A DNA stretch of 30,313 nt from Macrostomum lignano (Eukaryota): the NCBI GenBank assembly GCA_002269645.1, contig NIVC01004953.1, positions 1 through 30,313 of the forward strand, written 5' to 3'. The translations under genes were made by a program, and so were the position numbers. Below are positions 4,356-27,945 of this stretch, piece by piece (position 1 is the stretch's first letter; each line of letters opens with the position of its first letter). The notes below the pieces were generated by a model. The model had not been told where the DNA came from, did not search any database, and saw only the letters and a list, made by a program, of their open reading frames with translations.

Positions 4356-4379
4356 TGACTGATTGAAGATGCCAAATCC

Positions 4380-4860: not shown

Positions 4861-4942
4861 ATTTTAAACATTGAAATCGTCTCCGCTAAACTGGACTCAA
4901 TCGAATTTTTTCCGTCAAACAACTCAACTCTCCGGATTCATT

Positions 4943-6722: not shown

Positions 6723-8012
6723 TTAGGTGTACGGTTGGATGACGAAAACTCCAATAAGAGCTGCAGTGGCGGCCACTCCCATAGCAACCATGAGTCGTTC
6801 GACAGCGTGCGTAGCAACCACCCAATCGGATCGAACAACTGGAGTGTCCTCTTCATCAGTACTGTTCTTTTTTTCGATGCTAGTCCCATTCTTGATCTCG
6901 ACCTTGTTGATTTTGGCAGCACCGCCAACGCAGAACACTCGAGCCAAGAAGCCAATCAAAACGGCACGCATGCAGGCCGACATCCGATTGCCCTCCGGAG
7001 CGAAGTGCAGACGCATAATTAGCGACGTTAGTAGCAGAGATATCGTCGACAAGGTCATAGCGGCCGTGATGAACGAAGCGATCGCTGGTGTTGTCTGCGA
7101 CTTGGGCACGATGCTGTCCAGCAGAAGAAGGAACACAGTGTAGCTGAGCATGATTGTGATGCCGAATCCTAGCTTCTCGCCAGACTCCAGGGGCACAAAG
7201 TATACCAGCACTTGTAGCAAAGTCAGCAGTAGCAGTGGTGTGATGATGTTCATAAAGTAGTAGGCGGAGACTCTCTCGATCTCCAGACGGATCACATAAG
7301 TTGGTAGAAGCACATCCGGTGCACCTTGAACGAGTTTGTACGGCTTCCGTTCGGACGACGTCGACGCATTCACCAACTTCCATTCGCTGTTCATCCGATA
7401 AAGTCCGTCTATTTGGAATGGCGTCAAATTGTTCTTGACAGGAATCAGCATTTGGTTGTCATGGCCCTGGTCGTTGAAGAAGAACTCGAGCTCGCAGACG
7501 TGCTTGTCTATGGGGAATTTGCTCACGTCGAACTCACACGAGAATTCGAACTCTCGACGCCATCCCGCGATGACTCTGGTAAGGTTGGACTGGATCGACC
7601 TTAGATACACTGGCATCTGCGGAGTGAGCATCTGGTTGTCTCCGATGCCATTATAGATGAGGATGACAGGAAACCAGACATTCGAATTGTCCCAGTTAAT
7701 CACGGTTAGGTTCCCAAACTTGGCCGGATCCCAGACCAGACGCTCCTCGGTCCAGCCGGCCATTACGAAAGCCCCAATCTTGACGCTTTGCTTGGCACTG
7801 TCTACTGATACCAGCTGGGTCAATGATGTGTCCATAGTGATGTAAGTAGGCTTGTAGGCGTTAATTGTGGGTCGCAGCAGCGGACTATAGTTGGTGATAT
7901 TGTTCTTCAAGTACTGCAGCAGCTCGTGTTGCAGATCTCTATCTTGAGCTGAGCCGCCACAAGTGGCAGCTAAAATCGCTGTGGCGACTAGTAGAATTTC
8001 GCGTACGGACAT
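6723..8012 (-). CDS. Cys-loop ligand-gated ion channel subunit, nAChR-like non-alpha (array copy 1, intact, 429 aa)
   Basis: Uninterrupted ORF with ATG at 8012 (MSVREILLVATAILAATCGG signal peptide). Cys-loop CEFDVSKFPIDKHVC (C-x13-C), four hydrophobic helices, M2 GEKLGFGITIMLSYTVFLLLL, no vicinal CC. Confidence 0.93.
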   Translation of the reverse strand: MSVREILLVATAILAATCGGSAQDRDLQHELLQYLKNNITNYSPLLRPTINAYKPTYITMDTSLTQLVSVDSAKQSVKIGAFVMAGWTEERLVWDPAKFGNLTVINWDNSNVWFPVILIYNGIGDNQMLTPQMPVYLRSIQSNLTRVIAGWRREFEFSCEFDVSKFPIDKHVCELEFFFNDQGHDNQMLIPVKNNLTPFQIDGLYRMNSEWKLVNASTSSERKPYKLVQGAPDVLLPTYVIRLEIERVSAYYFMNIITPLLLLTLLQVLVYFVPLESGEKLGFGITIMLSYTVFLLLLDSIVPKSQTTPAIASFITAAMTLSTISLLLTSLIMRLHFAPEGNRMSACMRAVLIGFLARVFCVGGAAKINKVEIKNGTSIEKKNSTDEEDTPVVRSDWVVATHAVERLMVAMGVAATAALIGVFVIQPYT

Positions 8013-8157
8013 TGTGTCGATGTGTCGATACGGTGTAAGAGGCAAATGTTGGTTACTGCTTTCTACTCTATATCATCATAGAAAGCAGAGTTGAAGAAAA
8101 GATCCTATAGGATAGCTGTTTAGTCAATAACGCGTCTGGTCTACCAGTGCTGAATCA

Positions 8158-8171
8158 ATCGCCATGGCAAC
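8158..8171. promoter_or_regulatory. X-box (RFX)-like motif about 150 bp upstream of copy 1 ATG
   Basis: ATCGCCATGGCAAC versus consensus GTHNYYATRRNAAC: one mismatch, perfect 3' half. Confidence 0.3.
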
Positions 8172-9147
8172 GAGTGGAACTGCTGTAATTGAATTAATTT
8201 CATTTGTGGAGGTACTCTTGTGTGCAATATAACTGGTGACGTTGCTTCCGTGTTTGACTAAATATCCCTTACCCCCTGAGCGCACGAATCCTCCGTGTGT
8301 TAGTAAACGAGAAAGCTGGTAAAATATACATTATCAACTACTGCATGGTAGTAGTAAAGAGAAACTCTTCAAAATGTTTGAAAGGGGCTGTCAACTTAAG
8401 CACTGTAAGTATATAGAAGTAAGTAAGCTCGAATTAGATTTCTAAAAAAACTGACAAACCGACTGGCTGAAATAAATAACGAAAAATCCTATCAATGCAA
8501 GTTCGTTTCTGGAACTCTCTTAGAGAATATCTCCGACTTGTCCGTCTATGTATATATTTTATCCGGAGCCTCACTTCGGCCTCCATTCCAGAGCGTTTAG
8601 TTGGTATCCCTTTTATTAGAATATTTCGCTTTACAATGCAGATGCGAAATCGAAAATATACTCTCAACCTTTTAACGGGAATTCCAACGGGTATGTAAAA
8701 AGACCAACATCTTCCAACATTTTCCAACATCAAAATGTACAAAAAATAGATAAACTACTACTTCATATTAGTGGCGTAGATAATATATTGAGTATATTAT
8801 ACGTAAGCAGATAGCAGCGTGTGTGTATTCCGTCCTATAATAAGCATAAAGGACGCCATAAATAAATAATTATTTTAGTTGACAGCGCCCAAGCCGGAAA
8901 AATTATTTCTTTTTAGTAGCGGTTCCTGCAGCCAGCAACGCATCTGAGTCTTGTCCTGAGTCCCGGGTTCGATTCCGTGCGGGTAAGTACCGTTAATAAA
9001 ATCAACATTAATAATTTATGTATGTCATGACAATTTTAAAGCAAGAATATCAAGATGAGTTGCAAAACCAGTTAATAATTTTGCAACACTAATAAAAACA
9101 ACCATAAAATTAGTTCTCACAGTTGTTAACAGCATTGTGTTGTTTAG

Positions 9148-10428
9148 TTAGTTAATTAACAGTGGCCTCAGCAGGAATGCCCCAATAATAGCGGCGGTAG
9201 CAACAACGCCCATTAGCGACATGAGCCTCTCGATTGCTCGACCTGCTACTTCCCAGTCCGATTCTGACGCTTCTTTTTCACTTGGCCTCCGGGCATTTTC
9301 GTTCTCTGTATAGCCTTCGACAGCAATTTGATTGGTCTTCTGTGATGCCCTAGTGGCGCCGCTGACGCAGAGCAGGCGGCCCAGGTATCGAACAAAGACC
9401 GTCCGAGCGCATTCCGGCATGCGGCTGCCCTCCGGCCTGAAGTGGAACAGCATGGTCAGCGAGGTCAGCAGCAGCGACACGGTAGACAGCACCATGGCGG
9501 CCGTGATGAACAGGGCGATGGCGGGCATCTTGTGCGACTTCGGCAGGATTCCGTCCAGAAGCAGCAAGAACACAGTGTAGCTGAGCATGATTGTGATGCC
9601 GAATCCCAGCTTCTCACCGGACTCCAGGGGCACAAAGTACACCAGCACTTGGAGCAGGGCGAGCAGCAACAGAGGAATTATAATGTTAATTACATAATAG
9701 GTTGATATCCTTTTAATTTTTAATACGACTCTGTAAATGGGTAGTTTAAGAGTGGATTCCATTTCTTCATAAATGTCATATGTTTGGGTCAATATGCTGA
9801 CTGTAGCAGTTTCGAGATTCCATTCTTTACTATGCTGGTAAATGCCTAGAAGCTTGTACTTGATACGCGGAACCGCTGGATGCGTCAAGTTTTGATAGTA
9901 TGCGTCAGTGGCGAATAATTTTATTTCGCAAGTGTGTCGATCAAATGGAAACTCGGCCATGTTGTACGCGCAAAAAAAATCGAACTCACGTCGCCAAGTG
10001 GCTATCACCTCAGACAAATTGGGAGTTTTCGACTTTAATCCAACAAACACCTTCGGCACCAATGTCTGATCATTGCCGTTGCCATTGTAGACTATGATGA
10101 TCGGGTGCCAAATCTGTTCAGCTTCCCATCGGGTGTACACGGTATTGCCGAAGTCTTCTGGGTTCCACACGAGTCGCTCTTCCTCCCAACTGGCTTCAAC
10201 GTATGCTGACACCTTCATGCTTTGCTTAGCTGTGTCCACGGAGACAATGTGGCTCAGCAAGAAGTTCAGCGATATGTTCAACATCTTGGTTTTGTCGATT
10301 CGTGGAAAATGCAACGGATTGTGATCGGTATTGTTTTTTAGATATTTTAGCAGCTTGGCGTCAAAGTCGACAGTCGTTGGCGTAACAGCTATTAGAAGAC
10401 ATAAAAGGATCGCTGTTCTAGCGAGCAT
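9148..10428 (-). CDS. Cys-loop ligand-gated ion channel subunit, nAChR-like non-alpha (array copy 2, intact, 426 aa)
   Basis: Uninterrupted ORF with likely ATG at 10428 (MLARTAILLCLLIAVTP signal peptide). Cys-loop CAYNMAEFPFDRHTC, same M2, four TM helices. Confidence 0.93.
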   Translation of the reverse strand: MLARTAILLCLLIAVTPTTVDFDAKLLKYLKNNTDHNPLHFPRIDKTKMLNISLNFLLSHIVSVDTAKQSMKVSAYVEASWEEERLVWNPEDFGNTVYTRWEAEQIWHPIIIVYNGNGNDQTLVPKVFVGLKSKTPNLSEVIATWRREFDFFCAYNMAEFPFDRHTCEIKLFATDAYYQNLTHPAVPRIKYKLLGIYQHSKEWNLETATVSILTQTYDIYEEMESTLKLPIYRVVLKIKRISTYYVINIIIPLLLLALLQVLVYFVPLESGEKLGFGITIMLSYTVFLLLLDGILPKSHKMPAIALFITAAMVLSTVSLLLTSLTMLFHFRPEGSRMPECARTVFVRYLGRLLCVSGATRASQKTNQIAVEGYTENENARRPSEKEASESDWEVAGRAIERLMSLMGVVATAAIIGAFLLRPLLIN

Positions 10429-11199
10429 TTTGCCACGAGACAGGGCTTTGCTTTGAATTGATCGGTTAATTGTAAGTTGCTCGGTTTTCCACTGCAGCCA
10501 TATATATACAGCACCAGAGATCTCGCAACTCATCACCCTGGCGTGCTAGTGTAAATTCTAGATTGATTCTTATTTGAATTTCATTTAGGTAATTCAATAG
10601 ATCAAATATCGTAAAGTTAGCTGCTTATATTGGTCTGATATTCCAATTAGCAGATCCCTGACCTCGTTTGACGTCGTTATTTGCATAGAAACTTTTCATC
10701 GCTGCATTTTCTGGTCTGGGTGCGGTCTGCAGTAGCGAACTATCTTTAGCACGGATACGCGCGGCGCACCTTTATATAGCATTCTCGGATATGTATTCCA
10801 TGTATGCTAGCATGTTGCAAAAGGATGCTAATGAAATTTACGTGAATATTATGTGTATAGCTACTATCTGTTTAATTAATAAATTGGATAAATCCTACAA
10901 GCATTCTTCGCTCCCTTTCAAAGCCATGTCGTTTTGAAGTTGAATTTTAGTCTATACAGCAGGTGACAAAATCAAACTAACCTGTCCGTTGGGTCTTATA
11001 AATCAAGAGCAGCCCGGCACGCAGGCCGTGCCTCAAAGCTAAATCTGCGGCGCGGGTGTCGGCCAGCAGGCAGTCTACAGAGCGCCGAGTTCGCGTCTGT
11101 CCTCGCCCGAGTAACAGTCCAATTTGGCAACAGACCATCTCGGCGACAACCATTTCGACGAAATTAACAAGAAGTTCAATTTTAAACGAATCGTAATGA

Positions 11200-11334
11200 T
11201 CTCTGTCTCTCTCTCTCTCTCTGTGTATTCTTTGCGAGTATAAAATTATGTGATAAACAAATTCCGACTACCTTAATCGAATAAGCTAGTTGGCGAGAAT
11301 TTTCATTTTAAACAAATCGCAATGATCTCTCTCT

Positions 11335-11366
<32 letters not shown>
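11200..11366. repeat. Two (CT)n microsatellites, each preceded by a similar 24-bp motif
   Basis: ttttaaacgaatcgtaatgatctc (about 11180) and ttttaaacaaatcgcaatgatctc (about 11306), each running into (CT)n. Confidence 0.75.
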
Positions 11367-11368
<2 letters not shown>

Positions 11369-13305
11369 CTCTCTGGGTCTGCTTCCCAAAGGGTTCCATC
11401 CCTGTGGGTCATCCCGCTGCAAATGCTGCACCCACTCACCGCATGTTCTCTCCAACTACTCCAAGCTACACAACTCGGGGAGTGTGAATTTGCCTGCCAG
11501 CTGCAGTTGCAACAGACGCAACAAGTCGCTTTGAAGAACCAGGCCGGAGCTGCAATAGAAGGCCGCGTTGATAACTCGCATATCGCAGATCCTTAAGGCT
11601 GCGTGCAGCAGGTCCTATAGTGTTTTAGCATAGTTTTTATGTTGCCTACTGATCTCTCAAAGACACAGACAACGCAAGATGTACAGCATTCCATACACTG
11701 ACTCCATTGAAACATCCGACGTCACAGACCATATGCTTTGCTCTACTTCTCGCAGACAATTAGGGGTGTGTCCAAAATCGAGTTCCGTTGTGACAGCGAT
11801 GCTGATCCATCTTATCCGTAGATTGTGAATAACGTGCAAGACGCGTTTGGCGCAAGGAATGACCAACTTCCTTTGAATATTTTGGCCCAGCCTTTCATTC
11901 ATAAAATCCACCGTTAAATTTACGAACCGACCACTCTGAAAGTTCTACCAAAATTAACTTTGCCAACCTTGTGACTTACTAAATAGAAATAACGATAGGA
12001 AACTTCATTTAAAATAATTATAGCAAGTAAAAAATTCTGCGGTTTATACTTTTTTAAATTAATACATAACTTGAAATATTTAGGACTATATCTGTATGCG
12101 AATATGAGAGCTAGTGCAGAGTTTTCACAAGAGTACAGAAATGCTTTGCTGTCTCAAGGGATTTGTAAGCACCTCACTGAAAAGTCCTACACAGTCTACA
12201 TAGTTTAAGCTCTTACGGCTGTAGTGGACTTCTTTCTTCTGTAACGAGTGCAGCTGCCTTTGTCAACTGAGGGTTTGTAATACCGTCCATAAATTCCAGA
12301 TATCGACTCTGTTGAGCTAGCTAATTGCCTACCGAGCTGGAGAGTCCAGAAGCGAGAGCACTTCAACCGCTACGCAACTGAGCTTTAACAAACAAATCGA
12401 TTGCAGCCGGAGCCATTGAATCGATTATAGGGATCCAACACTCTATCGAAAGCAGTCTCCATTGTTTGTCTAAAGCATATTTACCTGCCAATATGCAAAT
12501 CGATATATACAGCATTTATAACCTAGAGGATGCTGCCACTGTGTAGATAGGCTCAATGCTATATTTGCAATGAAAACTTGAATTGTGAAAAGAATTAATC
12601 GCTTCAAATATATCGTAAATCTTTTCAGCACTTTTTAGATAGACGGTATGTAAATACCGACTGGTCCCAATACATGTGCAGGGCCAAAAGAATATCATGA
12701 TTGAGGGGAACCTTTAATTCAATAGAAATATTTTCTACTGGTCTGGGCGTATCTTATACGCTTCAATCAGCTGAGTATTAAATTTTTTATTCAGGACAAG
12801 AACAACTATATTTTAGTGCATTTAAATAATAGATTATAGAAAGGACAGTGCTCAACTAGTCTTTAAGACGTTTTATAGTTGTCCCAAACTATAAACTATA
12901 AAATAACATTTCTATTTTACGAGACTTTTTACTCAAAGTACATGAGGGCACAGAGTGTGTAATCGAAGTGTGCTTCAGCGAGTGTGTCTCACGGTGACAA
13001 AGCCAGAGGCCATTTTACACAATGTGCGAGAGTGTGCCTGCGTACGTTTTCATTAGTGTCAGTGCAGATGGGTCAGTGGAATAGGCATATGACTGCTTTG
13101 CCTCCTCGATCGCTGGCTGCCTAATTTGCGGCACTTTCCAGTCTAATCCCTTCAAACTTTGACTTAATAAGGAAGAGCTTTTAAAGCTCGTTCGCGATAC
13201 CACGAAAGGAGACGAAATTGCGATAGCACGAATTGTGAAAAGATTTTGTACCTTTTTACCGTACGGCAGTTCCTTGATCTAATGCTTTATTTTATGTCCA
13301 TTATT

Positions 13306-14557
13306 CTATAGTAAAAACAAGCCGATGATGGCAGCAGTAGCAACCACTCCGAACAGCAAGATGAGCCTTTCGATTGCGCGTGCCGCTACCACCCAGTCTG
13401 AATCGAATTCCCTGGCTTCTCCGGCAACCTCCAAGGCACTTCTATCGGCTATGCCGAAACCCTCCAACGGTTTCTGGCCGACCCGTGGTGACGTTGCAGT
13501 ACTGACGCGGAGCAGTCGGCCCAGGCATCGAACAAAGACCGCCCGAGCGCATTCTGGCATGCGGCTGCCCTCCGGCCTGTAGTGGAACAGCATGACCAGC
13601 GATGTCAGCAGCAGCGACACGGTGGACAGCACCATGGCGGCCGTGATGAACAGGGCAATGGCGGGCAGCTTTTGCGACTTCGGCAGGATTCCGTCCAGAA
13701 GCAGCAAGAACACAGTGTAGCTGAGCATGATTGTGATGCCGAATCCCAGCTTCTCACCGGACTCCAGGGGTACAAAGTACACCAACACCTGGAGCAAAGT
13801 CAACAGCAGCAAAGGCGTGATGATGTTGATGAAATAGTACGTTGACACTCGCTTTAATTGCAATCTCAGTATGAACGCTGGGAATGCAGTCTCATGTGCA
13901 TCCAATACGTGGTAAAGTTTCTTTTCAAAGTGTGTGGTGGCATTGGTCAGAATCCATTCGTTGCTCGGATTGTAGATTCCCTGCACACGTAGAGGGGCCG
14001 TGCTCGGAACAGGAATGATTGAATCGAGATAGCCTTGATTATGGTAAATAAATAACAGCTCGCAAACATGCTGATCGTATGGAAAGTCAACCATGCTAAA
14101 CTCGCAATAAAACTCGAACTCCCGGCGCCAGTATGCTGTGACTATGGTCAGCGTTGGCCTTAACGATAACAATGCAACAGGGATCTGAGGCACGAGAACT
14201 TGGTCCTCGCCGTTGCCATTGTATATCATGATTGTCGGATACCAGATATGCGCTGGGTCCCAGCGAGTGAGCTGGGTGCACCAAAGTCGGCAGGATTCCA
14301 CACGAGTCGCTCCTCCTCCCAGCTGGCTTGAAAGTAGGCAGATATCCTCAAGTTTGCTTGGCGGTGTCCACTGAGACCAGATGGCTGACCATGATGTCCG
14401 TAGCTACTTTAATAGTTTTGGTCTTATTAATTCGCGGCAGTATGAAAGGACTGTAGTTTTTTATGGTTTGCTTAAGATGTTGCATCAGCAGGACATCGAA
14501 ATCGGTTGCTGCTGAATATCTGAAGAGAGAAGCGATTAGGATTACTTGAAAAAACAT
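13306..14557 (-). pseudogene. Cys-loop receptor array copy 3, two 1-bp frameshifts (pseudogene or sequencing error)
   Basis: ORFs 14348-14557 (signal peptide, ...VSVDTAKQT) and 13306-14301 join into a full subunit if one base is restored at about 14351 (ACT[T]TG) and one at about 14279 (GGTG[G]C). Cys-loop CEFSMVDFPYDQHVC. The C-terminus ends slightly early (GLFLL*). Confidence 0.85.
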
Positions 14558-17394
14558 CCTTGTTGCAGTCCTAGAAAGTGTTTTGACTGAGGTCTATTGG
14601 TTAAACGAGAATCTTTCCTATCAATGTATCAACGAAAAAGTATTTCTGTGCTTGCTTTGCTTAGGTATACTCACCAAGGTTGGTTCAAATATTTTATAGT
14701 CAAGATCCAATCGATACGATGACGAATAATTTTGAGTACCAAAAACACGCTGTACTGATAGTAGTATGTTCCGCAGCTGCGTGGCATGGCATAGCATAGC
14801 GCAAACATTGTTATTGCATTTGACTGGAGGCAGACCTAATGTTCATCTTCAGGGACTTCTTAAACTAGTTTAAGTAGTCCCTGGTTCATCTTTTGATATT
14901 TTGCCTTTCGTATACATGTTACAAGATCCTAATATGCTTAGAAAATTAGGATTCTACATGTATGTTAAATTGATGTTCTTAGTACATTTCCTGTGCCCTA
15001 AGAGTTATAAAAATGGCCTAGCTCGACTTATTAGTTTTATGAATATCTTTTTTACCATTCTCAGCTTCTGACTATGTAACAAAAATTTTAACAGGATGAG
15101 TTGAGCGGTGCTATTTTTATAATTTTTCGGAATGGAACATGTCAGTAGGATATGTAATTAACATTTATCCTAAATTCTCAGTTCACAGCCTCAAATCTTA
15201 GGTTTTAGACGAAATTTCCAGGATATCGTCATATCTACAGTACAAATATGTGGCTATTAGCTACATCAATTCTGTTCAGTCTTGTATTATCTTTCAGGGG
15301 TATCTGATGTTAAGTCTGTCTGGCTCCATCTGTATTTTTTAGTTTATATTTTAAAACCATATTCCACTTCATGTAATTCAACTGACAGACACATAGAAAG
15401 TAATCAAACGTTTGCTCTTAATTACCCGTAAGCGTGCCCCTTTAGGGGGTGACGTTTACGGTGGTCAATAGCTGGTCGGGCACCGGTCTCTCCCTTGCTC
15501 TGAACACTTTTTGCGTCATGTATTCTTTATTTCCGTCGCCCCGCTCCCTCTTCGTCCCTCTGCCATGCGCGCACCCACCTCCCCCGATATGGTTTTAAGG
15601 TCTTCTAGCGTTGTGTCGGCTCGTCTTGTCTGTTTGCGCAGAGTCAAGTTTTATCCTCTGTGGTGTCTTTTATCCTTATTCATAATGGCGATCGCTTTTT
15701 CCTTAATCGTTGCTGATAGCTTATTTTACTCTTTTCGTCGAAATATTATGTCCCAAGTCTATAGGGTTTTATGGGGCTTGCGTGCCTCGCTCCCCCACGT
15801 TGGTGTTTGCGTCAGGCTGCTTTCGTGCTCCGAACGTGGAATTAACATCGGCGATAAGGAAACGTCAGTGTTGATGAGGTGGTAAGACTGCATGTACGAG
15901 CACAAGAACTGCCACCGATTCTTAGAAAAGAGGCTATAGGGGACATAGCGACATGGTATACACATGTATTGATGACTGACCGATGTAACTGTACCCCTAC
16001 GTTAGAGTACATAGAAATGAAGACCTCTCATACCAGAAAAGCATGAGTTTAATATGTGGTTACTACCGGAAATTTTTATTGGGTGAATCCCTAGCTCTTT
16101 AGTAAGACTCTCTAGGACTCAATGCGATTCAGACAAAATCTGCCACGGAGCTAAATGCACTGCTGCAAAATCACATGGACCCAAGCCTACCTACCTGCAT
16201 TCAAACTTCGCAACTTGTAGCTCGATTTGTATTTTTTCGATTTTTTGTACCTATTCATGTTTGATCAGGAAAAATTTGATGTAATTATAACTCCCTGTCT
16301 AATATTTACATGTTACATATGTAATTTGCATCTGTAATTCCTGCCTCTCTGCCTCAAAAAAGCTTTTTAAGGGATAATTTTTAACAGTACGTGTTTAAAT
16401 GGAAGCTTGAATTCTGATTTGATTTTGAATTGTGGCCGATTTCTGTTGCCAAGTTCGGAAGTTCTGAGGACTTCGGTATTCGATGTAGGCAGAGCCGTCT
16501 GACTCGCCCCGCGACCCCCGGGATCGGTTCAGTACGCGGCCACATGCATATCGGGCCTGTGCACGAAAGTTGGCCCAGGGGGTTGTCCTGCGATTCTCGC
16601 CCACATGCGGGCCAAACCCCAAGGCGCAGAGGGTGTACATCCCCTGACGATTAGAAAGTCAAAAAGGCCCTGTGTGAGCGTGTGCACGAATGCGTGCCTG
16701 CTTACAGTATTAGCGCGCTTGTGTGTGCTCAGGACTCGGCGGAATGGCCAGAATTGCCTCAGAATTGCAGAAGAGCAGTATAGTGGATGAAGCCACAACC
16801 CTTTGTAATTATTATTAATAATAATCTTGTTATAGGGAGAGCACTTAATCTTTCCTCTCCTAGCTACCATCAATTAACTAGCTAGGAAGAACTTAATTAA
16901 TTATACACGGTTTCTGCTCTCGCTGAAATACAGACTGTTTACTCTGCAACTGAAGCAGATTTAGCGCCCAGCATGGCAACTGGACGAACGGGCCGCATTG
17001 CTCGCTATTCAAATATTTGCCCAAACGTTAATTGCATTAGCAAAACGCCTAGCCTATTTCCATTGCCTGCATTTCGCGCTTGACTAGTGCGTATCCAATG
17101 GCAACGGTGACTAGTTACTTTCGTTTATTCAAGCCCTTCCGCGATTGGCATTAGCCTATGCATGAAAAAATTGATCACGCATGTTTCACTACAGATCTAT
17201 CTAGTCACTGCCCAAGAAGGCCCGGGGATCAATGCCTGTTTCCTAAATTCAGAGCTAAAAAATTCCGAAAATTCAATTCAGAAGATTATTCAGAAAATAA
17301 AACAAAACCATTGCAAAGAGTATCAATGAATATGGTAGTCAATAGAATGCCAATGCCTTTCATAAGCATTCAAATCTCAGTTATTCAAGTTTCA

Positions 17395-18714
17395 TTAAGA
17401 GAACTGAAGATACGGCCCCATCAGAAAGACTACAATTATGATGGCGGTAGCAACCACTCCTAACAGCGACAAGAATCTCTCGATAGCGCGGGTGGCCACC
17501 ACCCAGTCTGAATCGACCGATTTCTCTTCCGCCGTAGGCGGTTTCCGCACGCAGTTGCCATCGCCCTCAGCTTCAGCCGGACTCTGCTGGCCCACCTGTG
17601 GCGCCGCTGACGCAGAGCAGGCGGCCCAGGCATCGAACAAAGGCCGCCCGAGCGCATTCCGGCATGCGGCTGCCCTCCGGCCTGTAGTGGAACAGCATGG
17701 TCAGCGATGTCAGCAGCAGCGACACGGTGGACAGCACCATGGCGGCCGTGATGAACAGGGCAATGGCGGGCATCTTCTGCGACTTCGGCAGATTCCGTCC
17801 AGAGCAGCAAGAACACAGTGTAGCTGAGCATGATTGTGATGCCGAATCCCAGCTTCTCACCGGACTCCAGGGGTACAAAGTACACCAACACCTGGAGCAA
17901 AGTCAACAGCAGCAAAGGCGTGATGATGTTGATGAAATAGTACGTTGACACTCGCTACAAGTGCAATCGCAGAACAAAGTTCGAAGTTCGGTCTCGTTAT
18001 GTCCTTCGATTATAAAATATTTTTTGGTTTCCAAATCTGCTGTTGCAATTTTCAATATCCACTCGTTGCTAGGCTTGTAAATTCCTGTCACCCGCATGGG
18101 CATTGCGCTGCGAACAGGCCGCATTGCATCAGGATTGGCCTGAGTTGCAAGGAAGAACAGCAGCTCGCAAGTGTGCTGGTCGTACGGAAAGTCGGACATG
18201 TTGAATTGGCAAAAAAATTCGAACTCCCGGCGCCAGGATGAAGCAACCGTCGTCACGCTTGAATTTTTAGAAGCAGTGTAAGTAGGAATCCGAGGAATCA
18301 GAATCTGTTCATCGCCGTTGTTGTATGTCATGATGATTTAGGTGTACCAGGAATTCTGTTCATCGCCGTTACCGTTGTATGTCATGATGATTGGGTACCA
18401 AATTTTCGCTGGGTCCCAGCTAGTAGAACTGACGCCACCAAAGTCGGCAGGATTCCACACGAGTCGCTCCTCCTCCCAGCTGGCTTAAACGTAGGCAGCG
18501 ATTTTGATGTTCTGCTTGGCAGTGTCCACTGAGACAAATGGGCTGACCATGATGTGAAACGACACGTTGACTTTCTTTGTCTTGTTTAATATTGGCAGAA
18601 TCATTGGCTGTAGTTTGCAATTTTGTTGTTTAGGTGCTGCATTAGCAGGACATCGAAATCAGTAGCTAGTGTCGAGGCTAAAAGCGAAACCAGCAGTATG
18701 AATGAGAATAGCAT
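17395..18714 (-). pseudogene. Cys-loop receptor array copy 4, multiply disrupted
   Basis: Start MLFSFILLVSLLASTLATDFDVLL at 18714. Lesions: 1-bp losses at about 18606, 17983, 17803 and 17791; in-frame stops at 18485-18487 (TAA) and 17955-17957 (TAG); an imperfect duplication of about 51 bp at 18304-18392 carrying a TAA. Cys-loop CQFNMSDFPYDQHTC. Confidence 0.88.
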
Positions 18715-18968
18715 TTTATGTCTCATTTTCCAGTGCATTGCTGATCGCATTGACAACTGGTACGTCTGATAAAATAGTTTTAATGCCGTTTCACCCCGAC
18801 CAACTACAGGTTGGGCTCAAAGATCGCCTGAAAATCCGTTTGCTACTGAAATTCGATTGGACAGATAGCTTTCATCAATATGAAAGCATAAAGCAGCGCC
18901 AGTGTTATCACATTTCTAGCGAGATATTTGATAAATATTGGCTTGAAAAAAATAGACTTGCTTTTTTT

Positions 18969-20884
18969 CAAGCCAATTGAGCTAGGAGCAAGAAATTTAA
19001 TCCTTAGTGGGAAGATCAAGCTATTGAAGACAATTGCTTTTCATTGTCTAGCAATTTGACGATCATTATTCACATTTTTAATGCAGAACAATCCATTACT
19101 ACAAGCAATGCATTTTCTTTAGGATCGTCAAATAGAAAAACAATGCAAAGAATCAGCGGTCGCAGCACGTGGCAACGATTTGTCTATGGCTCGCGCCTAC
19201 CGGCGCTCGCCAGACAATCGTTGTCACGCACTGGGACCGCTGATTATTTATCCATTGTCTATGGCCCGAAAGGGGGTCCATGGAACAACCAATTTGAGAA
19301 TTTGGGCGCGCTATTAATCCTTTCCACAGTTGCGCAAGCCTTAGACCATAGAAAATAACAGATTTCATTAGACAAACATAGACATGGCAGACGAAGAATT
19401 TAGCGAGCAGAGCAGTGACGAAAGTTTTGCTACAGCCCAAGATGGAGTAGATGAGCAGAATCCTGCAGGGCGAGAACCCTATCGCAAGATAAGCAACGAA
19501 AAGTACGACCTGATTATCGCTGCCATCGATAGAGGTGATAGTGCTGAGCACATTTCGCGATAGCTGGACGTAAAGAGAAAAACAGTTTATTCTATCAGGC
19601 GTCGCTATGAAACCACGGGACGCCGGGACCGCACACGACGGGGTGGAGATCGAGCATCGAAACTGGAAGAGAAACACATCCAACTACTTCTTTCATCACT
19701 GGATATCATCCTCTAATGACGTTGAAAGAGTTGCGACGCAAGTTGACTGACACCTATCCAGGCCGAAGTGAGTACTACAGCTGTAAGCCAGACCTTGGAC
19801 AAACAGCTGATTACATTGAAGTGCCTTGGTCGAGACGCCGATGTGCCAGTGGTCAGGAATAGTCCTGAATATCGGGCACGCCGACGAGAATTTTCTCACT
19901 GGTTCACTGGTGTTCCACTTGAACATCACCTCATCTATGTTGATGAGACCGGTTTCAACATTTGAACTCGCCGGTCCCAAGGACGCAGCAGACGTGGCCA
20001 GCGAGTCCGACGTGTTTTGCACACGCAACGTGGGGTTCAGGTCAATTTCCTGCAGGCAGTGGCACCAAATTTCGGCTTGGTACACCACAAGATTGTCGGT
20101 CACACACTGACTTCAAACGTGTTTCAAGCATTTGTCGAAAGAGCTGCTCCATGCTGTCAACAATCGAGATGATGTAGACAATGCCGAGAACTTCTTAGTA
20201 ACCATTGATGGCGCTCGCTTCCATAGCGGCTGAGGATCCCCAGCAGTTTGAGCTGAACTGGCAGGTTGTAGTACTGCCTCCATATTCTCCATTCTGAACC
20301 CGACCGAGTGTGCGCATTCCTGTTTGAAGGCGGCCATCAAGCGGCAGCTTGCACAGCCACAGGTGCAAATCGAATTGGACAATCCACCGCCAGAGACAAC
20401 ACTGCTCGAGTGGTGCGTACTCGTTCTTCATCGGATTGCGGAGGAGACAACGGCTGAGATCACAGAGGCCAAATGCGGTGGCTGGTTTCGGCAGATGCTT
20501 CGCTTCATCCCGCACTGCTTAAACGAGGAAGAAATTCTCTGAACATTGATCGGGTTTGGTTTCAATCTGTCCAACACTGTTTTGAGAGACACGATTGTTC
20601 TCGGCTTATACTGTATGCCATGGTTTTTCCTTTGCCTGTTTGATTGGTTTCTCTGAAATCAAAGTGTTAATGTCAATCGTTTCTTGATATGCCATCTATT
20701 TGCAGACGTTATTTCAGTAAAGTTATTCGTGAAGGATATACGAGCACTGTGAAAAGGATTAATTCTCAAATTGGTTGCTCCATAGTCCCCATTTTTTGGG
20801 CCATAGACAATGAAAAGCAAGTGTTCAATAGCTTGATTCTCCCAATAAGGATTAAACTGCTTGCTCCTAGGCTCAATTGGCTTG
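18969..20884 (+). mobile_element. Decayed IS630/Tc1/mariner DNA transposon with imperfect inverted repeats
   Basis: Inverted repeats: 18969-19050 plus 19253-19328 match the reverse complement of about 20750-20884 (caagccaattgagc..., cattgtctatggccc..., caaccaatttgagaat). A transposase remnant lies inside. Outer ends may extend a few tens of bp further. Confidence 0.85.
19384..20542 (+). pseudogene. DDE (IS630/Tc1-like) transposase pseudogene
   Basis: ATG at 19384. HTH-like segment (AEHISR*LDVKRKTVYSIRRRY...RGG), IYVDETGFNI (first D), IDGARFH (second D), LPPYSP-LNPTE (E). Several stops and frameshifts. Confidence 0.88.
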
Positions 20885-21900
20885 GAAACTTCTATACTAA
20901 ATTTGATTTATCATTTGGCCGTCAGGCTTTTTACAATATTGCAGCTCCCCTCAAAATGCATGTTTAATCCTCTAAAGAGAGCATAGACATAACGATTTTC
21001 CAGGATAATACGAGCGTATTGAATCCCGGAAATCCCGGAATGGAAGTAATGTAAATCGTTATATCTATGTTTTATATGGAGCTTTAGTTCTATGTCTATA
21101 GTTATAAGCTTGTAATTGGACTGAAGTGGTGCTGTTCCCCAGGGTTTTTTGGTTCTGTAGGGTAAAATACAGACTCAGTTTTTTTTTCTTCATCTAAATT
21201 AGATATTTCTTCAAGATTTAACACACATTAACACAACACACACCATTACCCTCGTATATCCTTTACATAAAGCAATAGGAGTGGAGCTAGTATAATACTT
21301 CCCATTTACAATATTTTGTAATCTAGCGAGCAAGGACTCGAATGTCTTTGTCCCTGGACAACTAAGGTAAAATAATTGACGAATTATGTGTACCCCACTG
21401 TCCCCCTAAGAAGTTAAAACAAAAACAAAATGCGCTGTCAGAGTTCTTAGATGGCAGCGTCACAAGGTCACAATTAGAAGCGTCACATAAATCTGATATA
21501 TTCGTAAAATATCGAATGTATTATTTCAAAGATTTAGCTAGGACAGAAAATTTTATGAAGATAGCGTTGAGAAAAAATTTATATTTAAGCGAAAGGATAA
21601 TGTCCAATAGAGTTTATTTAGATAGAGCATAATTGTGTGCAGCTGAGATTATAAACATTTCTTGGGCGTGAATACGAACAAAGATCACAGCGAGGGTACA
21701 AGTTGAAGACCAGTAAACTCCAATTATCGACTGATTTTCACCTCCTCAAATGTGTGAAAAAATTAAAACAATAATTTTCAAAAATAAGGCTCACTCTGAG
21801 TTATCAGTGGGTTAAATTTCGAGCAAGATTATTTAAACAAACAGTCTTAAATTCACTGCGCGTTGATAGCTCGTAGATTCCTCTTACGCTCGTAAACAGC

Positions 21901-23205
21901 TTAGTCTTGATTTTGAATCATGGGTTTCAAAACAAACACTCCGATGATTGCAGCTGTGGCGAAAACTCCCAGAGCCACCATCAGCCTCTCAATCGCGTAG
22001 GAAGCCACAATCCATTCCGACTTCGCCACGGGAGCTGAGTCGGCCATCTTGCGCACACTGGACTCACTTGCCGTTGCGTAAGCAGTCGGAGTCTCACTGT
22101 CCTGCGCACTGGACGAGCCGTTCACGCAGAACACGCGTCCAAGGAATCGGACAAAGAAGCCTCGGGCACATGCGGGCATCTTGGTGCCCTCCGGAGCGTA
22201 GTGAAATCGCATGATTAGCGAAGTTAACAGCAGTGACACCGTTGACAGGATCATGGCAGACGTGATGAACGATGCAATAGCTGGTGTTGACTGCGACTTC
22301 GGCAGGATGCCGTCCAGAAGCAGCAGAAACACGGTATAACTGAGCATGATTGTGATGCCGAATCCCAGTTTCTCGCCGGATTCGAGTGGTACAAAGTACA
22401 CCAGCACTTGAAGCAGAGTCAACAGCAACAGCGGAGTGATTACGCTTATCAAATAGTACGTTGAAACTCTTTTAAACTGCACCCTGATGATATAAGATGG
22501 GAGAATTTGCTTCGCAGCTACTCCGCGAATCAAATTGTAAGCCCTATATTCAGCTTTTGAGGATGCATTCACCAATGTCCACTCGCTGCTCTCTGTGTAT
22601 AGCGCCTTTATATCGAATGGGTGATTGGTCTTCGCTATTGGAATTACCATCGAATTTCCGTGCCCCTGGTCGCTGAAGAAGAACTCCAACTCGCAGTCGT
22701 GCTGATCCCAAGGGAATTTTGACACGTCAAATTGGCAGGCGAATTCGAACTCGCGACGCCACATTGCAGTAACTTGCGTACTGTTCACTGTTGTCGACAA
22801 AAGATCTACCGGCATCTGCGGCGCGAGAACCTGTCCGTCTCCAATGCCATTATACACCATGATAACAGGAAACCAGACCTCTGACGCGTCCCGGTTAATC
22901 ACTTTCACGCCGCCAAACTTTTTCGGATCCCAAACCAGTCGCTCCTCCTCCCACACAGCCTGAATGAATGCTGATATTTTTATGCTCTGCTTTGCCGTGT
23001 CTACAGACACAATCTGAGACAGAAGCGAGTCCATCACGATTTGGATCACCTTGTCCTGGTTAATTCTTGGTAACAGATTCGGGCTGAAATAGCTGATGTT
23101 GTTCTTTAAATACGTGTCAAGTTCACCCTCGAAGTCCTGCTGTCCCTGGACACCAGCCGCTGTCAGCAATAGTGTGATGACAGTCACAAATAGAGCCGGC
23201 GTCAT
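21901..23205 (-). CDS. Cys-loop ligand-gated ion channel subunit, nAChR-like non-alpha (array copy 5, intact, 434 aa)
   Basis: Uninterrupted ORF with signal peptide MTPALFVTVITLLLTAAGVQG, Cys-loop CQFDVSKFPWDQHDC, same M2, four TM helices. Confidence 0.94.
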   Translation of the reverse strand: MTPALFVTVITLLLTAAGVQGQQDFEGELDTYLKNNISYFSPNLLPRINQDKVIQIVMDSLLSQIVSVDTAKQSIKISAFIQAVWEEERLVWDPKKFGGVKVINRDASEVWFPVIMVYNGIGDGQVLAPQMPVDLLSTTVNSTQVTAMWRREFEFACQFDVSKFPWDQHDCELEFFFSDQGHGNSMVIPIAKTNHPFDIKALYTESSEWTLVNASSKAEYRAYNLIRGVAAKQILPSYIIRVQFKRVSTYYLISVITPLLLLTLLQVLVYFVPLESGEKLGFGITIMLSYTVFLLLLDGILPKSQSTPAIASFITSAMILSTVSLLLTSLIMRFHYAPEGTKMPACARGFFVRFLGRVFCVNGSSSAQDSETPTAYATASESSVRKMADSAPVAKSEWIVASYAIERLMVALGVFATAAIIGVFVLKPMIQNQD

Positions 23206-23838
23206 GTTTATCAGCTAGCTATGCTTTGGTATGCCTCGGTTCTCAAGAGAAATTCAATCAAACTTTGGTTATAAATATGGAGTTTGTCCAAACAATGGAT
23301 TTGTTTCATGATTGGCTTGCTGTGTGGCTTCTGACGCGAGCCACACGCATACAGTATGCATATTTGAGTGGTGCTCCTAACACAACGCTTACCTGAGTGG
23401 TGAAAACTGTGCAAGTTGATTGATTGATCAGATTAGGAGAAGCAAGCAAACGGGCGCACGCAGTATATAGTAGAGCTGCTTTAATTATTAATTCTGCTAA
23501 AAATAAAATGAAAGTCATGATTGAAAGCTTTCCATATAACGTCCAAACCAATTTTAGTGGCACTTTTACTCGTAGTGCCTTTAATTTCTATTGTTAATTG
23601 CTTTGCTATCGCAACAATGAGTGGGTACGAATGAAAGTTGGACGGACGAGCCAAGCCAAATAAGCGCATATTAACAACGAATACCGGATATTCGGTGCCT
23701 GGTTTTACTGTGTACTGGAGTGTTAGTGCCTGCGGTTAAATTTACTCATTGAATTTACTGATGCTATTTGTTTGATGAGTGGAATTAATGTGGATTGTGA
23801 AATGCTTGGGGTTTTTCGGGGTGGCCTGGAAGGTCTTT

Positions 23839-23858
23839 GAATCCCACCGCTGCCACCA
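23839..23858 (-). other. Primer-binding site complementary to the tRNA-Leu 3' end
   Basis: The + strand GAATCCCACCGCTGCCACCA equals, as I recall it, the 3' end of metazoan tRNA-Leu(AAG/TAG) including CCA. On the - strand, TGGTGGCAGCGGTGGGATTC begins 1 nt after the LTR-terminal CA. Confidence 0.8.
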
Positions 23859-23859
23859 G

Positions 23860-24830
23860 TGAAATAGATTGGGGTTTCTTCCCGATTTAGGCGCTTAAGA
23901 TTACCTTAAGACTCGAGCCTCTTCAGTGGGAAGTTCTCTCAACTCTCAGTAGCGTAGGTAGTGCTGCCACCAGTTCCTTCAGGTCTCGGCCTTCGATGAG
24001 GTGAGCTTCCCGTCGGAACGAAATAAACAAGTCAACGAACTCAGCACAGCGTGCAGATTTGCAGATTAATGAACAAGGCGTCCTGATCAGCAGATCCCCG
24101 CCGGGCTCAGGGGTGGCTGGAAGGCAGTGTTAGCCTCCCTTAGGCTTGGGCTTTAGTGGGGTCTCAGTCAGACCAGTACAAACGGATTCAGTACGCAAAG
24201 GGCACTTAGTTAGACACTGACGCACACGGGATCTTAGTGAATTCTCCGCAGATAAGAAGCCAAATCCTTGACGGAAACAAGGGGAGAGGGGTCCTATTTA
24301 TAGCCGGGAAACACCCACGCACAAGACCTCGTGACTTGTTCTATTTTTAGAACTGACGTCACTTGAGATCTCGAGGCAGGGTCTCAGTGCGCGCAAGACC
24401 TCGTGACTCGTTCTATTTTAGAACTGACGTCACTTGAGGTCTCCGGCCAGAGTACACGCGGCTGTGACTCAGTTGCTATTTTTAGCAACATGAGTCACTC
24501 CTCTCCTTAGAGAAGGGAGGGGTCCGAAAGCACGTGATTCTCCCGGTAAACAGGGCCAACGAGTGCAGTAAACATGTTTACTGCACTTTAGGACTCGAAG
24601 AACGCAGAGTCTGTCATGTGACTTGCTCACATGACAGAGGAAAACGGGACGGGAACGAAACAGAGACAGCCCACAGCAGAGAAGCTGAGGGCTGAGAACA
24701 GAGACGCAGAAGGGCAGAACAGGCCAAGGGCAGCAACAGACGGGCCAAGGGGGGTGGGAAGCTGACCAGCGGCAGACAGCAACCCAGGGCGAGGGCGAGG
24801 GAGACTGCTGACAAAGTGGGACGCCTAACA
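23860..24830 (-). mobile_element. 5' LTR (about 970 bp) of a truncated LTR retrotransposon
   Basis: The - strand begins TGTTAGG at 24830 and ends ...ATTTCA at 23860, directly before the PBS. TATA box CTATAAATAG at 24303-24294, motif-rich U3, and an abrupt switch to AT-rich host DNA after 24830. No gag/pol is seen downstream. Confidence 0.75.
24294..24540 (-). promoter_or_regulatory. LTR promoter/enhancer: TATA box, two CRE sites, two AP-1 sites, E-box
   Basis: TGACGTCA at 24354-24361 and 24425-24432, TGACTCA 24465-24471, TGAGTCA 24491-24497, CACGTG 24531-24536, TATA on the - strand at about 24302-24296. Confidence 0.55.
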
Positions 24831-25505
24831 TCAACTAGCGGATCACTACAATTAGCAATTATACAATAACTGCATAATAAATTAAATAGTTTGCAATTTT
24901 TTGTAATACTGCTTTTAATATTTTGTCGAAGTTTCTACAAAACAAGTTTCTATGAATCTTCACTCGCTCCCACTTCTAGTTTGAAAAGTAGACTTTTACG
25001 AGTGGTTCTGAAATAATAATAAACCTTCGCTCCATCAAAAATATATTTAACTAAATAAACTAATTATATTAATTATACATATATAATTAATAATAATACA
25101 CTTCTCTGAAACTCTCCTTTCTCACTTGCTCTGGCACCGAAATGTCTGGCAACGAAGTTTCTGGCTACATAACAACCAAACTTTTCTTAGTTCACTCACT
25201 AAAGTTTCTCGTTTCATAAAAGTTCGAAACTACTCTAAGTAGCTAAAAACGGATGGAAAAGTTTTGCTAACGACGCATTTTTTGGTGAAGTTATTGTTAA
25301 ATTTAAGATTATCCAGCGACAAGAAGTACATGTGGACAGAAAATGTATAGCTGGTAGTAGTAGTGTTTGATTAGACGAAAATATTTATTTATTTAAACAT
25401 TTAAAATATTGATGCGTGATGCGCATTTTCTCGCGCTTATTCCTCCAAAAATAAAGGAAGATGTTAGCCTCAGTGAAACTGTTAGCTGCCAATTGTGAAG
25501 CCAAG

Positions 25506-26809
25506 TCAGCATTTGTACGGCGAATCCCAGTAGGGCCTGATGATGAGGCCGCCCAGGAGGGCGGCTGTGGCTGCAACACCCAGCGCTACCATCAGCCACT
25601 CGACAGACTTTGTTGCCACCGTCAAATCCGATTGAATCCGGCCGGCGTTTCCATCCACTTTTCTAACGTTGGTCCGGCTATTGTCGCTATTTTCCGTCCA
25701 AACCGTCGCGTCGCTACCTTTCACGCACAGCAGACGGCCTAGAAATGGACGAGAACGACTTTAAGGCAGGTTGGCATTCCATCATCTCCAGGCGTGAAGT
25801 GAAGTCGCATGGTCAAAGAAGTCAGTAGGAGAGATCCTGTGGACAGAATCATCGCAGACGTGATGAAATATGCAACAAATGGCAGCTTTTGTGACCGATA
25901 GAATGCCGTCCAGGAGCAGTAGGAACACAGTGTAGCTGAGCATGATTGTGATGCCGAATCCCAGCTTCTCACCGGACTCCAGTGGCACAAAGTACACCAG
26001 CACTTGAAGAACAGACAACAGAATGAGCGGTGCAATGATGTTAACGAAGTAATAATTTGATACTCGACAGATCTGAAGCCTTAATTCGTACGTTGGAAGC
26101 AGCGCCTTTCTCGAACCTCGAATCAGTGCGTACTCCTTGAACTCTGCAGACGTGGAGAAGTTCAGAAGTGTCCATTCGCTGCTATTTTGGTATAGAACTA
26201 GCGGGTTATACGGAACCAGCTTGTTGACCTCAGGTTCTACCCCAGAATTGTGCCGTTCAGGATCGATGAAGCAGAATGATATAGAGCAGTCGTGCATGTC
26301 CACGGGAAACTGGCTTAGCTTACGTCAAACTTGCAAGTGAATTCGAACACGCGACGCCATGGAGCCGTGACTTGGGTTAAGTTGGGTGATTGCGACGTTA
26401 GGAAAACTGGCGTTTTTGATTGCGGCACCTGATCCTGTCCTACACCGTACATCAAAATCAAAGGGCTCCAGATTTCATCAACTTTCCAATTAATAACGGT
26501 AACATCACCGAATTTGCTCGAATTCCAAACCAGCCGCTCCTCTTCCCATTTTGCCTGAAGCAATGCGCTCACTCGTATCGTCTGCTTCACCGTGTCAACC
26601 GCAGTTATGTGGGTCAGCAGAGGGTCCATCCTGACAGCAATTTTAGCATTCGGCTCTATCCTGGGCGGGAGCAGGGGACTGTAGTTGGTTATGTTGTTCT
26701 TCAAGTACTGTATCACGTTAGCCTGGTGGTCCGCCCAGACAAAGCTGTTGCAGAAGAAACAGACAGCAAGAACAGTGAGAACAGCTGACAAATTTCGTAG
26801 TGGAGCCAT
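25506..26809 (-). pseudogene. Cys-loop receptor array copy 6, frameshifted
   Basis: ATG at 26809 (MAPLRNLSAVLTVLAVCFFC). A 5-bp tandem duplication TAAGC at 26313-26322 breaks the Cys-loop (CKFDVS[*]QFPVDMHDC). Further lesions are a 2-bp loss at about 25895 and a 1-bp loss at about 25742. Natural stop at 25506. Confidence 0.88.
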
Positions 26810-27312: not shown

Positions 27313-27945
27313 CTGGCGCCCCTGGTTCTGGCGCCCCTGGTGCTGGCGCCCTGGTGCTGGCGCCCCTGGTGCTGGCGCCCCTGGTGCTGGCGCCCCTGGT
27401 GCTGGCGCCCTGGTGCTGGCGCCCCTGGTGCTGGCGCCCCTGGTGCTGGCGCCCCTGGTGCTGGCGCCCCTGGTGCTGGCGCCCCTGGTGCTGGCGCCCC
27501 TGGTGCTGGCGCCCCTGGTGCTGGCGCCCCTGGTGCTGGCGCCCCTGGTGCTGGCGCCCCTGGTGCTGGCGCCCCTGGTGCTGGCGCCCCTGGTGCTGGC
27601 GCCCCTGGTGCTGGCGCCCCTGGTGCTGGCGCCCCTGGTGCTGGCGCCCCTGGTGCTGGCGCCCCTAGTGCTAAAGCCCCTGGTGCTAAAGCCCCTGGTG
27701 CTAAAGCCCTGTTGCTAAAGCCCCTGGTGCTAAAGCCCCTGGTGCTAAAGCCCCTGGTGCTAAAGCCCCTGGTGCTAAAGCCCCTGGTGCTGGCGCCCCT
27801 GGTGCTAAAGCCCCTGGTGCTAAAGCCCCTGGTGCTGGCGCCCGTGTGCTAAAGCCCCTGGTGCTAAAGCCCCTGGTGCTAAAGCCCCTGGTGCTAAAGC
27901 CCGTGGTGCTAAAGCCGCTGGTGCTAAAGCCCTGGGGCTGGCGCA
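27313..27945. repeat. 15-bp GC-rich minisatellite (GGCGCCCCTGGTGCT / AAAGCCCCTGGTGCT)n
   Basis: About 42 tandem units with occasional 14-bp units. The GGC variant dominates the left part and the AAA variant the right part. Confidence 0.95.

Follow-up and report, generated by a model that had tools for sequence, protein, structure and literature searches.

A tandem array of six divergent nicotinic receptor-like genes in Macrostomum: putative subunits of cation channels gated by something other than acetylcholine

We analysed a 30,313-nt stretch of flatworm DNA from the genus Macrostomum (contig NIVC01004953.1; hereafter, the window) and found in it six homologous Cys-loop receptor genes. The genes occupy positions 6723-26809, are all located on the minus strand, and were delimited by searching the window with the intact copies (tblastn) and by a six-frame list of open reading frames (ORFs). 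With moderate confidence, we interpret the array as a clade of pentameric ligand-gated cation-channel subunits specific to the Macrostomum lineage, which arose from the alpha7/alpha9/alpha10-like group of nicotinic acetylcholine receptors (nAChRs). Judging by their residues, members of this family probably form cation channels gated by something other than acetylcholine. The genes, numbered by position, are listed below with coordinates running from start to stop.

g1: 8012-6723, minus strand; intact, 429 amino acids, ATG at 8012 (the mechanically called ORF begins at TTG 8045)
g2: 10428-9148, minus strand; intact, 426 amino acids, ATG at 10428
g3: 14557-13306, minus strand; near-complete, with two frameshifts and no further lesion
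g4: 18714-17395, minus strand; dead pseudogene
g5: 23205-21901, minus strand; intact, 434 amino acids, ortholog of BOX15_Mlig033226g1 (PAA92206.1) of Macrostomum lignano (M. lignano)
g6: 26809-25506, minus strand; three frameshifts and one in-frame 3-bp deletion

The start-to-start gaps from g1 to g6 measure 2416, 4129, 4157, 4491, and 3604 bp, and tblastn with the intact copies detected no seventh copy in the window. An earlier reading of the sequence, referred to here as the original prediction, had described six co-oriented paralogs at a spacing of 2.4-4.5 kb, three of them intact and three broken. Our results agree with this description (intact: g1, g2, and g5; broken: g3, g4, and g6), and the limits that it gave to the array are exactly the stop of g1 and the start of g6. 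Each of g1, g2, and g5 consists of one uninterrupted ORF that spans the protein from a hydrophobic leader to the fourth transmembrane helix (M4), and these three genes thus have no coding intron. None of the six has one, as had also been proposed; the mean for M. lignano genes is 4.9 introns (PMC5730564). The Pfam domains Neur_chan_LBD (PF02931) and Neur_chan_memb (PF02932) were found in each full copy well over the gathering scores; for g1, the values were 1.5e-27 (ligand-binding domain) and 9.9e-20 (transmembrane region). Genes g1 and g5 share 60% amino acid identity. The predicted C-x13-C loop is present in every copy. An AlphaFold model of g5 (predicted local distance difference test, pLDDT, 72) comprises a beta-sandwich and the helices M1-M4, so that the four expected transmembrane helices are accounted for (residues 249-269, 278-298, 309-335, and 397-431). 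The proposed signal peptide held up in part: an N-terminal hydrophobic leader is present, and the assignment was made only by eye and from a modelled helix at residues 3-21.

The proteins fall into the Cys-loop superfamily, having both the ligand-binding and the four-helix domains, with C-x13-C accompanied by FP[WIFYV]D in nine of nine family sequences. Within the superfamily they belong to the nAChR branch, since their nearest neighbours by sequence and by structure are nicotinic and not serotonin (5-HT3), gamma-aminobutyric acid (GABA), glycine (Gly), or glutamate-gated chloride (GluCl) receptors. Among solved structures, g5 matches human alpha7 best by sequence (1.2e-40); other nicotinic subunits come next, and Alpo4 (1.2e-25) and 5-HT3A (1e-24) rank lower. 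The top Foldseek matches of the g5 model are alpha4beta2 and alpha7, with template modelling (TM) scores of 0.64-0.78 and a probability of 1.00 to nicotinic chains.

The relatives of the family were sought by an exhaustive HMMER profile search of 1.84 billion representative proteins, which returned 11,187 relatives. Hits above 250 bits came from Macrostomum only. Below these came ordinary alpha7-, alpha10-, and alpha3-like subunits together with fused gene models; their sources were cnidarians, amphioxus, echinoderms, bivalves, nematodes, and vertebrates. Only three close relatives, all of them UniParc entries, emerged from a word-indexed protein search; these and one further fragment belong to M. 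lignano according to cluster look-ups. Identity to any non-Macrostomum protein was at most about 30% (BLASTP). No annotated protein of the g1, g2, or g6 type was found in the exhaustive representative search, no flatworm protein outside Macrostomum occurred among the top hits with a traceable source, and no relative turned up in JGI metagenome contigs scanned with peptide patterns of the family. Neighbour joining of 109 sequences recovered the family as monophyletic, with a stem 10 times as long as the median internal branch. The proteins thus form a separate long-stem clade and are not orthologous to any conserved subunit, and together with the low identity to proteins from elsewhere this upholds the lineage-specific character that had been claimed for them.

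The tree contains two subclades, one uniting g6, g5, and g1, and the other uniting g4, g3, g2, and the M. lignano protein P0002. The latter is intact (419 amino acids) and is only 55% identical to g2, its nearest window gene, which implies at least one further family type encoded outside this locus. The subclades are not contiguous in the array: g1 is parted from its nearest relatives by the entire other subclade. This separation points to a past rearrangement or block duplication of the array. A prokaryotic or viral origin of the window was considered and rejected, as its closest DNA is a flatworm chromosome and its flanks are eukaryotic satellites.

To characterize the binding pocket and the pore, nine family sequences were compared with the 97 nearest nAChR-like proteins, the pocket being read from the alignment. 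The tryptophan of loop B, Trp149, makes the cation-pi contact with acetylcholine; it is replaced by N, T, S, I, A, or H in nine of nine family sequences and is W in 86/97 relatives. Asp89 of the WxPD motif (D in 87/97 relatives) is V, I, L, T, or E in the family and D in none of the nine. The loop-C pair Cys190-Cys191 occurs in 0/9 family sequences and 60/97 relatives. Tyr195 (Y in 60/97) has become L, F, or I, and loop-D Trp55 (W in 76/97) has become F, Y, L, or I. Kept are Tyr93, Tyr188, the Cys loop, Trp60, Trp86, and Pro88, apart from one sequence with Phe at 188 and one with Arg at 60; the kept residues are mostly present in the relatives as well. In the pore, Glu-1' and Leu9' are found in all nine family sequences (94/97 and 93/97 relatives, respectively), the motif before M2 is the cationic S-G-E-K in all copies, and the 20' acidic ring (Glu or Asp in 76/97 relatives) is Gly or Ser.

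Compared with functional nAChRs, then, the family has the cation pore with E-1' and L9', and has neither the aromatic box nor the vicinal cysteines. The original prediction had called the genes atypical, and it was right: Trp149, Asp89, Cys-Cys, and Tyr195 are replaced in every copy. Loss of acetylcholine binding is well supported by these replacements. We infer a cation channel whose orthosteric pocket would be unable to hold a quaternary ammonium in the classical way.

A second version of the locus allowed the array to be followed over time. Exact-protein look-ups of window g5, P0001, P0002, and P0003 returned no contigs; PAA92206.1 (P0174) alone gave a locus, on scaffold NIVC01000059.1 of the M. 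lignano assembly Mlig_3_7 (L001). Between the window and L001, coding DNA is 95-97% identical and synonymous divergence is 0.076-0.089; for g5, identity is 95% at the amino acid and 96.6% at the nucleotide level. Intergenic DNA is only 85-90% identical, whereas duplicated blocks in Mlig_3_7 were counted at a threshold of ≥95% identity (PMC5730564). By these values, the window could stem from a sister species closely related to M. lignano or be an old homeologous copy in the M. lignano genome itself. Intact ORFs orthologous to g4, g5, and g6 are present in L001, and the remains of g3 were also recognized there. Besides the g5 ortholog, the locus includes the following features.

L001 7884-9188: ortholog of g6, intact ORF of 434 amino acids
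L001 12825-14105: ortholog of g4, intact ORF of 426 amino acids
L001 16333-16674: relic of g3, with the C-terminal third alone left after a deletion of about 1.9 kb

The window segment 3128-11999 (8.9 kb), which carries g1, g2, and two satellite blocks, has no counterpart in L001, and its borders are adjacent there: window 12000-12560 aligns with L001 17536-16925, and window 3002-3127 with the adjoining L001 17537-17667. Loss of this segment in the L001 lineage is more likely than its gain in the window, because g1 and g2 are paralogs of long standing, as the saturation of synonymous sites in their extracellular domains shows. Each of the two sequences keeps three of the six ancestral genes intact, and g5 is the only one that is intact in both. 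At the synonymous divergence given above, this is direct evidence of rapid turnover by birth and death, with copy number changing through deletions and frameshifts, and it bears out the mode of evolution proposed originally. In the transcript-based annotation of Mlig_3_7, the g5 ortholog alone is modelled; the intact g4 and g6 orthologs of L001 have no gene model. The L001 array is flanked by a GIPC1-like PDZ gene with introns (L001 19062-21305), whose window counterpart would sit past the left end, beyond the CT-rich satellite.

The intact copies are under purifying selection. The ratio of non-synonymous to synonymous divergence (dN/dS) between orthologs was 0.29 for g5 (P = 1e-4), 0.35 for g6, and 0.43 for g4, with binomial P values of 1e-4 to 1e-3 against neutrality. 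In the g5 pair, dN/dS was 0.17 in the extracellular domain, and M1-M3 was entirely unchanged. Nothing pointed to positive selection; g5 is the only clean ortholog pair. Among the paralogs, synonymous sites of the extracellular domain are saturated and the identity of this domain falls to 40-60%, so the duplications are old and do not represent a recent burst. The pore behaves differently. Over 41 codons that run from the last part of M1 through M2 into the first part of M3, protein identity among paralogs is 93-100%; the M2 pore-lining segment is protein-identical across all copies, and paralog dN in the M1-M3 core is 0-0.05. Most paralog pairs have a pore-region DNA identity of 85-91% with many synonymous differences, and since these differences remain, the invariance of the pore in most pairs is ascribed to purifying selection. 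Genes g2, g3, and g4 depart from this pattern: their DNA identity is 91-100% over about 90 codons (M1-M3) versus 45-75% in the extracellular domain, and the fraction of codons that are the same is 0.80-0.88 versus 0.45-0.59 (Fisher's test, about 2e-6). This is a signature of gene conversion of the pore module among the three genes. The overall picture is that of a frozen pore module joined to freely diverging ligand-binding domains.

We next considered the broken copies and whether their lesions are real. Gene g4 is certainly dead. Compared with its intact M. lignano ortholog, it has seven frameshifting indels (-1 at 18603, +1 at 18291, -1 at 18271, -1 at 17985, -1 at 17803, -1 at 17792, and -8 at 17600), an internal 51-bp duplication (+51 at about 18370), and two nonsense substitutions (CTA>TAA at 18487 and AAG>TAG at 17957). 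The duplication is in tandem, lies at about 18320-18370, and doubles the coding stretch IIMTYNGNGDEQ. In g3, a three-frame reading of the DNA and the frame changes in tblastn placed the two frameshifts near 14350 (after VDTAKQ) and near 14280 (after NPADFG), 70 bp apart. In g6, comparison with the M. lignano ortholog revealed +5 at 26322, -2 at 25895, and -1 at 25746, in addition to the in-frame -3 at 26448. It could be argued that g3 and g6 are truly intact and that their frameshifts are assembly errors, in which case the array would hold five intact genes and one pseudogene. The lesions of both genes are indeed small indels only, without substitution-type stop codons, and the two shifts in g3 jointly restore the frame. 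We nevertheless regard assembly error as quite unlikely. All five frameshifts fall within g3 and g6 and none within g1, g2, or g5, whose 3.9 kb contain no indels, a distribution with P of about 0.01 if errors were random; the g6 indels of +5, -2, and -1 bp are unlike homopolymer slips; and between the g3 shifts a stop codon follows immediately in the frame set by the start codon. The M. lignano protein P0003, from an older assembly, is a g4-type protein of 255 amino acids that loses the frame after WILKNAS. It could stem from a second broken copy in M. lignano or from a mistake in the older long-read assembly. A frameshift common to P0003 and window g4 was rejected, because the shift in P0003 comes after WILKNAS and that in window g4 at codon 241.

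The intronless structure is a trait of the receptor family and not of the genome, given the mean intron number of M. lignano genes and the split GIPC-like gene neighbouring the array in L001. By standard though unproven inference, the sequences point to an origin by retrocopying followed by tandem duplication. A single retrocopy of a nicotinic receptor would have lost all coding introns, and ancient tandem duplication would then have produced at least six genes here and at least one type (P0002) elsewhere in the genome. The intact subunits would assemble, probably with one another, into cation channels that have a common pore and variable ligand-binding domains and that are opened by a signal other than acetylcholine.

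Several observations weigh against this scenario. Neither a poly(A) relic nor a target-site duplication can be seen, and retroposition is deduced from the absence of introns only. Expression data were found neither by a full-text search for Mlig033226 nor in the supplementary files of the paper on the M. lignano genome. Loss of Trp149 speaks against acetylcholine binding at the principal face and leaves room for a complementary or structural role in acetylcholine-gated heteromers, and Tyr93 and Tyr188 are retained in the family. Confidence in the AlphaFold model is moderate, so that the pocket chemistry is that of the alignment. The g5 ortholog has a gene model in an RNA-seq-based annotation and counts as transcribed. 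The intact g4 and g6 orthologs of M. lignano have no transcript-based model, and some copies may be silent. The missing models may reflect expression confined to very few cells, or no expression, a weak hint that cuts both ways.

In addition to the reading that we favour, a clade of cation channels with a ligand other than acetylcholine, three rival readings of the whole array were weighed. The most far-reaching is that the array is a chemosensory repertoire, used in peripheral sensory neurons for environmental chemicals, and thus a flatworm analogue of the cephalopod chemotactile receptors. We hold this to be doubtful, although the parallels are many. As in chemotactile receptors (PMC11526382) and many chemoreceptor families, the genes are intronless and tandem, have lost the acetylcholine residues, join a variable domain to a constant pore, and are pseudogenized fast; pocket positions 89, 190, 191, and 195 are aliphatic, which recalls the hydrophobic pocket of chemotactile receptors (PMC13174522); and two intact M. 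lignano copies without transcript-based models fit expression in very few cells. On the other hand, positive selection has left no signal, the only clean ortholog pair having a low extracellular dN/dS (0.17). The family found is small (six genes here and at least one other type), no specific affinity to chemotactile receptors was seen among the best 60 sequence and 50 structure matches, and like hallmarks occur in bivalve nAChR expansions that are tied to development, stress, and immunity (PMC6896357). By analogy, and equally tentatively, a retrocopied nicotinic receptor of free-living flatworms might have given rise, independently, to a small, fast-turnover family of ionotropic chemoreceptors with a conserved pore and interchangeable ligand-binding domains. 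If true, this would be the third independent recruitment of a neurotransmitter-gated channel for chemosensation, after the protostome ionotropic receptors (IRs) and the cephalopod chemotactile receptors. An environmental ligand would mean an independent origin of an ionotropic chemoreceptor family; any other would make the array one more orphan clade of a superfamily in which such expansions are well known. Transgenesis and knock-down in M. lignano make the role of orphan invertebrate nAChR-like channels testable.

The genes might instead encode accessory subunits that join canonical alpha subunits in acetylcholine-gated receptors, as the structural or complementary face, and tune them without contributing an agonist site on a principal face of their own. 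Nicotinic heteromers ordinarily include non-alpha subunits that lack Cys-Cys; the family retains Tyr93, Tyr188, the Cys loop, and a canonical cation pore, and its pore module is strongly conserved, as expected for partner matching. We still consider such a role unlikely. Loop-D Trp55, a key residue of the complementary face, is also replaced (F, Y, L, or I), and Asp89 is lost in all copies despite being near-universal even in non-alpha subunits (87/97). Furthermore, M2 is identical within the family and differs from that of canonical subunits, for instance in having G or S instead of E or D in the 20' ring, and gene loss as fast as that between these close relatives is unusual for core synaptic subunits. 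That the entire array consists of decaying, functionless retrocopies is hardly credible. Decay is evident, with three of the six copies broken in the window and, in M. lignano, one reduced to a relic and two deleted, but paralogs with saturated synonymous divergence keep open frames of about 1.3 kb and an invariant pore, ortholog dN/dS is significantly below 1, and the g5 ortholog is transcribed. Channels gated by something other than acetylcholine therefore remain our preferred reading.

A segment of about 1.9 kb between g4 and g5 (18965-20888) is absent from L001, where the interval measures 764 bp compared with 2478 bp in the window. Its edges are 86-bp inverted repeats (18965-19050 and 20888-20804) that are 88% identical, and it is probably a non-autonomous DNA transposon. 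The Pfam scan of intergenic ORFs, including those inside this segment, gave no match. Another 1.5 kb of window sequence, in the gap between g5 and g6 (23667-25169), has no counterpart in L001, where the flanking alignments abut at 9533/9548; the ORF 24469-24834 inside it has no Pfam match. Rfam and transfer RNA (tRNA) scans of the window returned no match.

The flanks of the array are composed of CT-rich satellites and other tandem repeats, in keeping with the 15% share that simple and tandem repeats have in the M. lignano genome (PMC5730564). Positions 269-1806 and 3386-4228 are long CT-rich satellites, built of 7-bp units (TCTCTTC-like) and organized in a higher-order unit of 23 bp; they are extremely asymmetric between the strands (GC skew of -0.6 to -0.76) and give rise to spurious Ser/Leu-rich plus-strand ORFs of up to 588 amino acids. 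Positions 4378-4891 hold a tandem repeat with a 30-bp unit (GAAATCCTCTCCGTGAAACTGAACATCATC), a 110-bp higher-order period, and 90% matches. Just upstream of g6, at 27313-27944, there are 42 copies of a 15-bp tandem repeat (CTGGCGCCCCTGGTG; 93% matches), which yields repetitive ORFs in several frames on both strands. Right-flank ORFs look like noise.

Finally, the array was compared with known systems. Within the nicotinic receptors, it is closest to alpha7/alpha9/alpha10-like subunits, with which it shares the fold, the Cys loop, E-1', and L9', and among which it has its best sequence and structure matches. It differs from alpha7-type subunits in an identity of 24-30%, the loss of Trp149, Asp89, Cys-Cys, and Tyr195, the lack of an acidic 20' ring, a short M3-M4 loop of about 55 residues, and the absence of introns. 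Alpo4 (PDB 8BX5 and others), from the annelid Alvinella pompejana, is an orphan receptor gated neither by acetylcholine nor by serotonin (PMC10338036). Like the Macrostomum proteins, it is a lophotrochozoan nAChR-like subunit on an isolated branch without the loop-C Cys-Cys; unlike them, it still has the aromatic cage, with Trp159 in loop B and Trp65 in loop D, both of which the Macrostomum family has lost. Among flatworms, schistosomes have acetylcholine-gated chloride channels (ACCs), as cited in bioRxiv 10.1101/2022.09.12.507717. These too are platyhelminth nAChR-like subunits with non-classical properties. The ACCs are anion-selective, with a motif of the Pro-Ala-Arg type before M2, whereas the Macrostomum copies all have S-G-E-K.

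The cephalopod chemotactile receptors were reportedly described by van Giesen (2020) and Allard (2023). In the accounts given by PMC11526382 and PMC13174522, they are intronless nAChR derivatives in tandem clusters, with remodelled, more hydrophobic pockets. The array resembles them in comprising nAChR-derived cation-channel subunits with an intronless coding region, tandem clustering, replaced acetylcholine residues, and lineage-specific expansion. It differs in belonging to another phylum, in its independent origin and much smaller size, and in showing no signal of diversifying selection. Shared descent was not found, the family having its own long stem, in a tree without chemotactile-receptor sequences, and at most about 30% identity to proteins outside Macrostomum; no cephalopod protein was present among the named top hits.

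A published parallel comes from bivalves, for which Jiao et al. (2019; PMC6896357) reported intronless tandem nAChR arrays of 2-12 genes, which they attributed to retroposition and stepwise tandem duplication. Those arrays are highly divergent, include pseudogenes and fragments, and show species-specific loss; no flatworm was sampled, and intronless nAChR genes were said to occur only in molluscs (PMC6896357). The Macrostomum genes share with them intron poverty, tandem arrangement, divergence, and lineage-specific gain and loss, i.e., the same process, and are not orthologous to the molluscan genes. They differ in number (a handful versus about a hundred) and in a pore module that is identical across paralogs, partly via gene conversion. 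The claim of a new family in the original prediction was therefore overstated: like architecture has been published for bivalves (PMC6896357) and cephalopods (PMC13174522, PMC11526382), and the g5 ortholog BOX15_Mlig033226g1 has been catalogued, appearing without comment as an nAChR-like channel in the S1 Table of a flatworm survey (PMC6881066). The kind of system is known; the clade, the phylum, and the fine structure are undescribed before. The array carries into Platyhelminthes the pattern documented in molluscs, that of a nicotinic retrocopy multiplied in tandem with its acetylcholine residues lost, and does so in compact form, with six genes in 20 kb, five of which have been lost in one or other of the two syntenic sequences at a synonymous divergence of about 8%.

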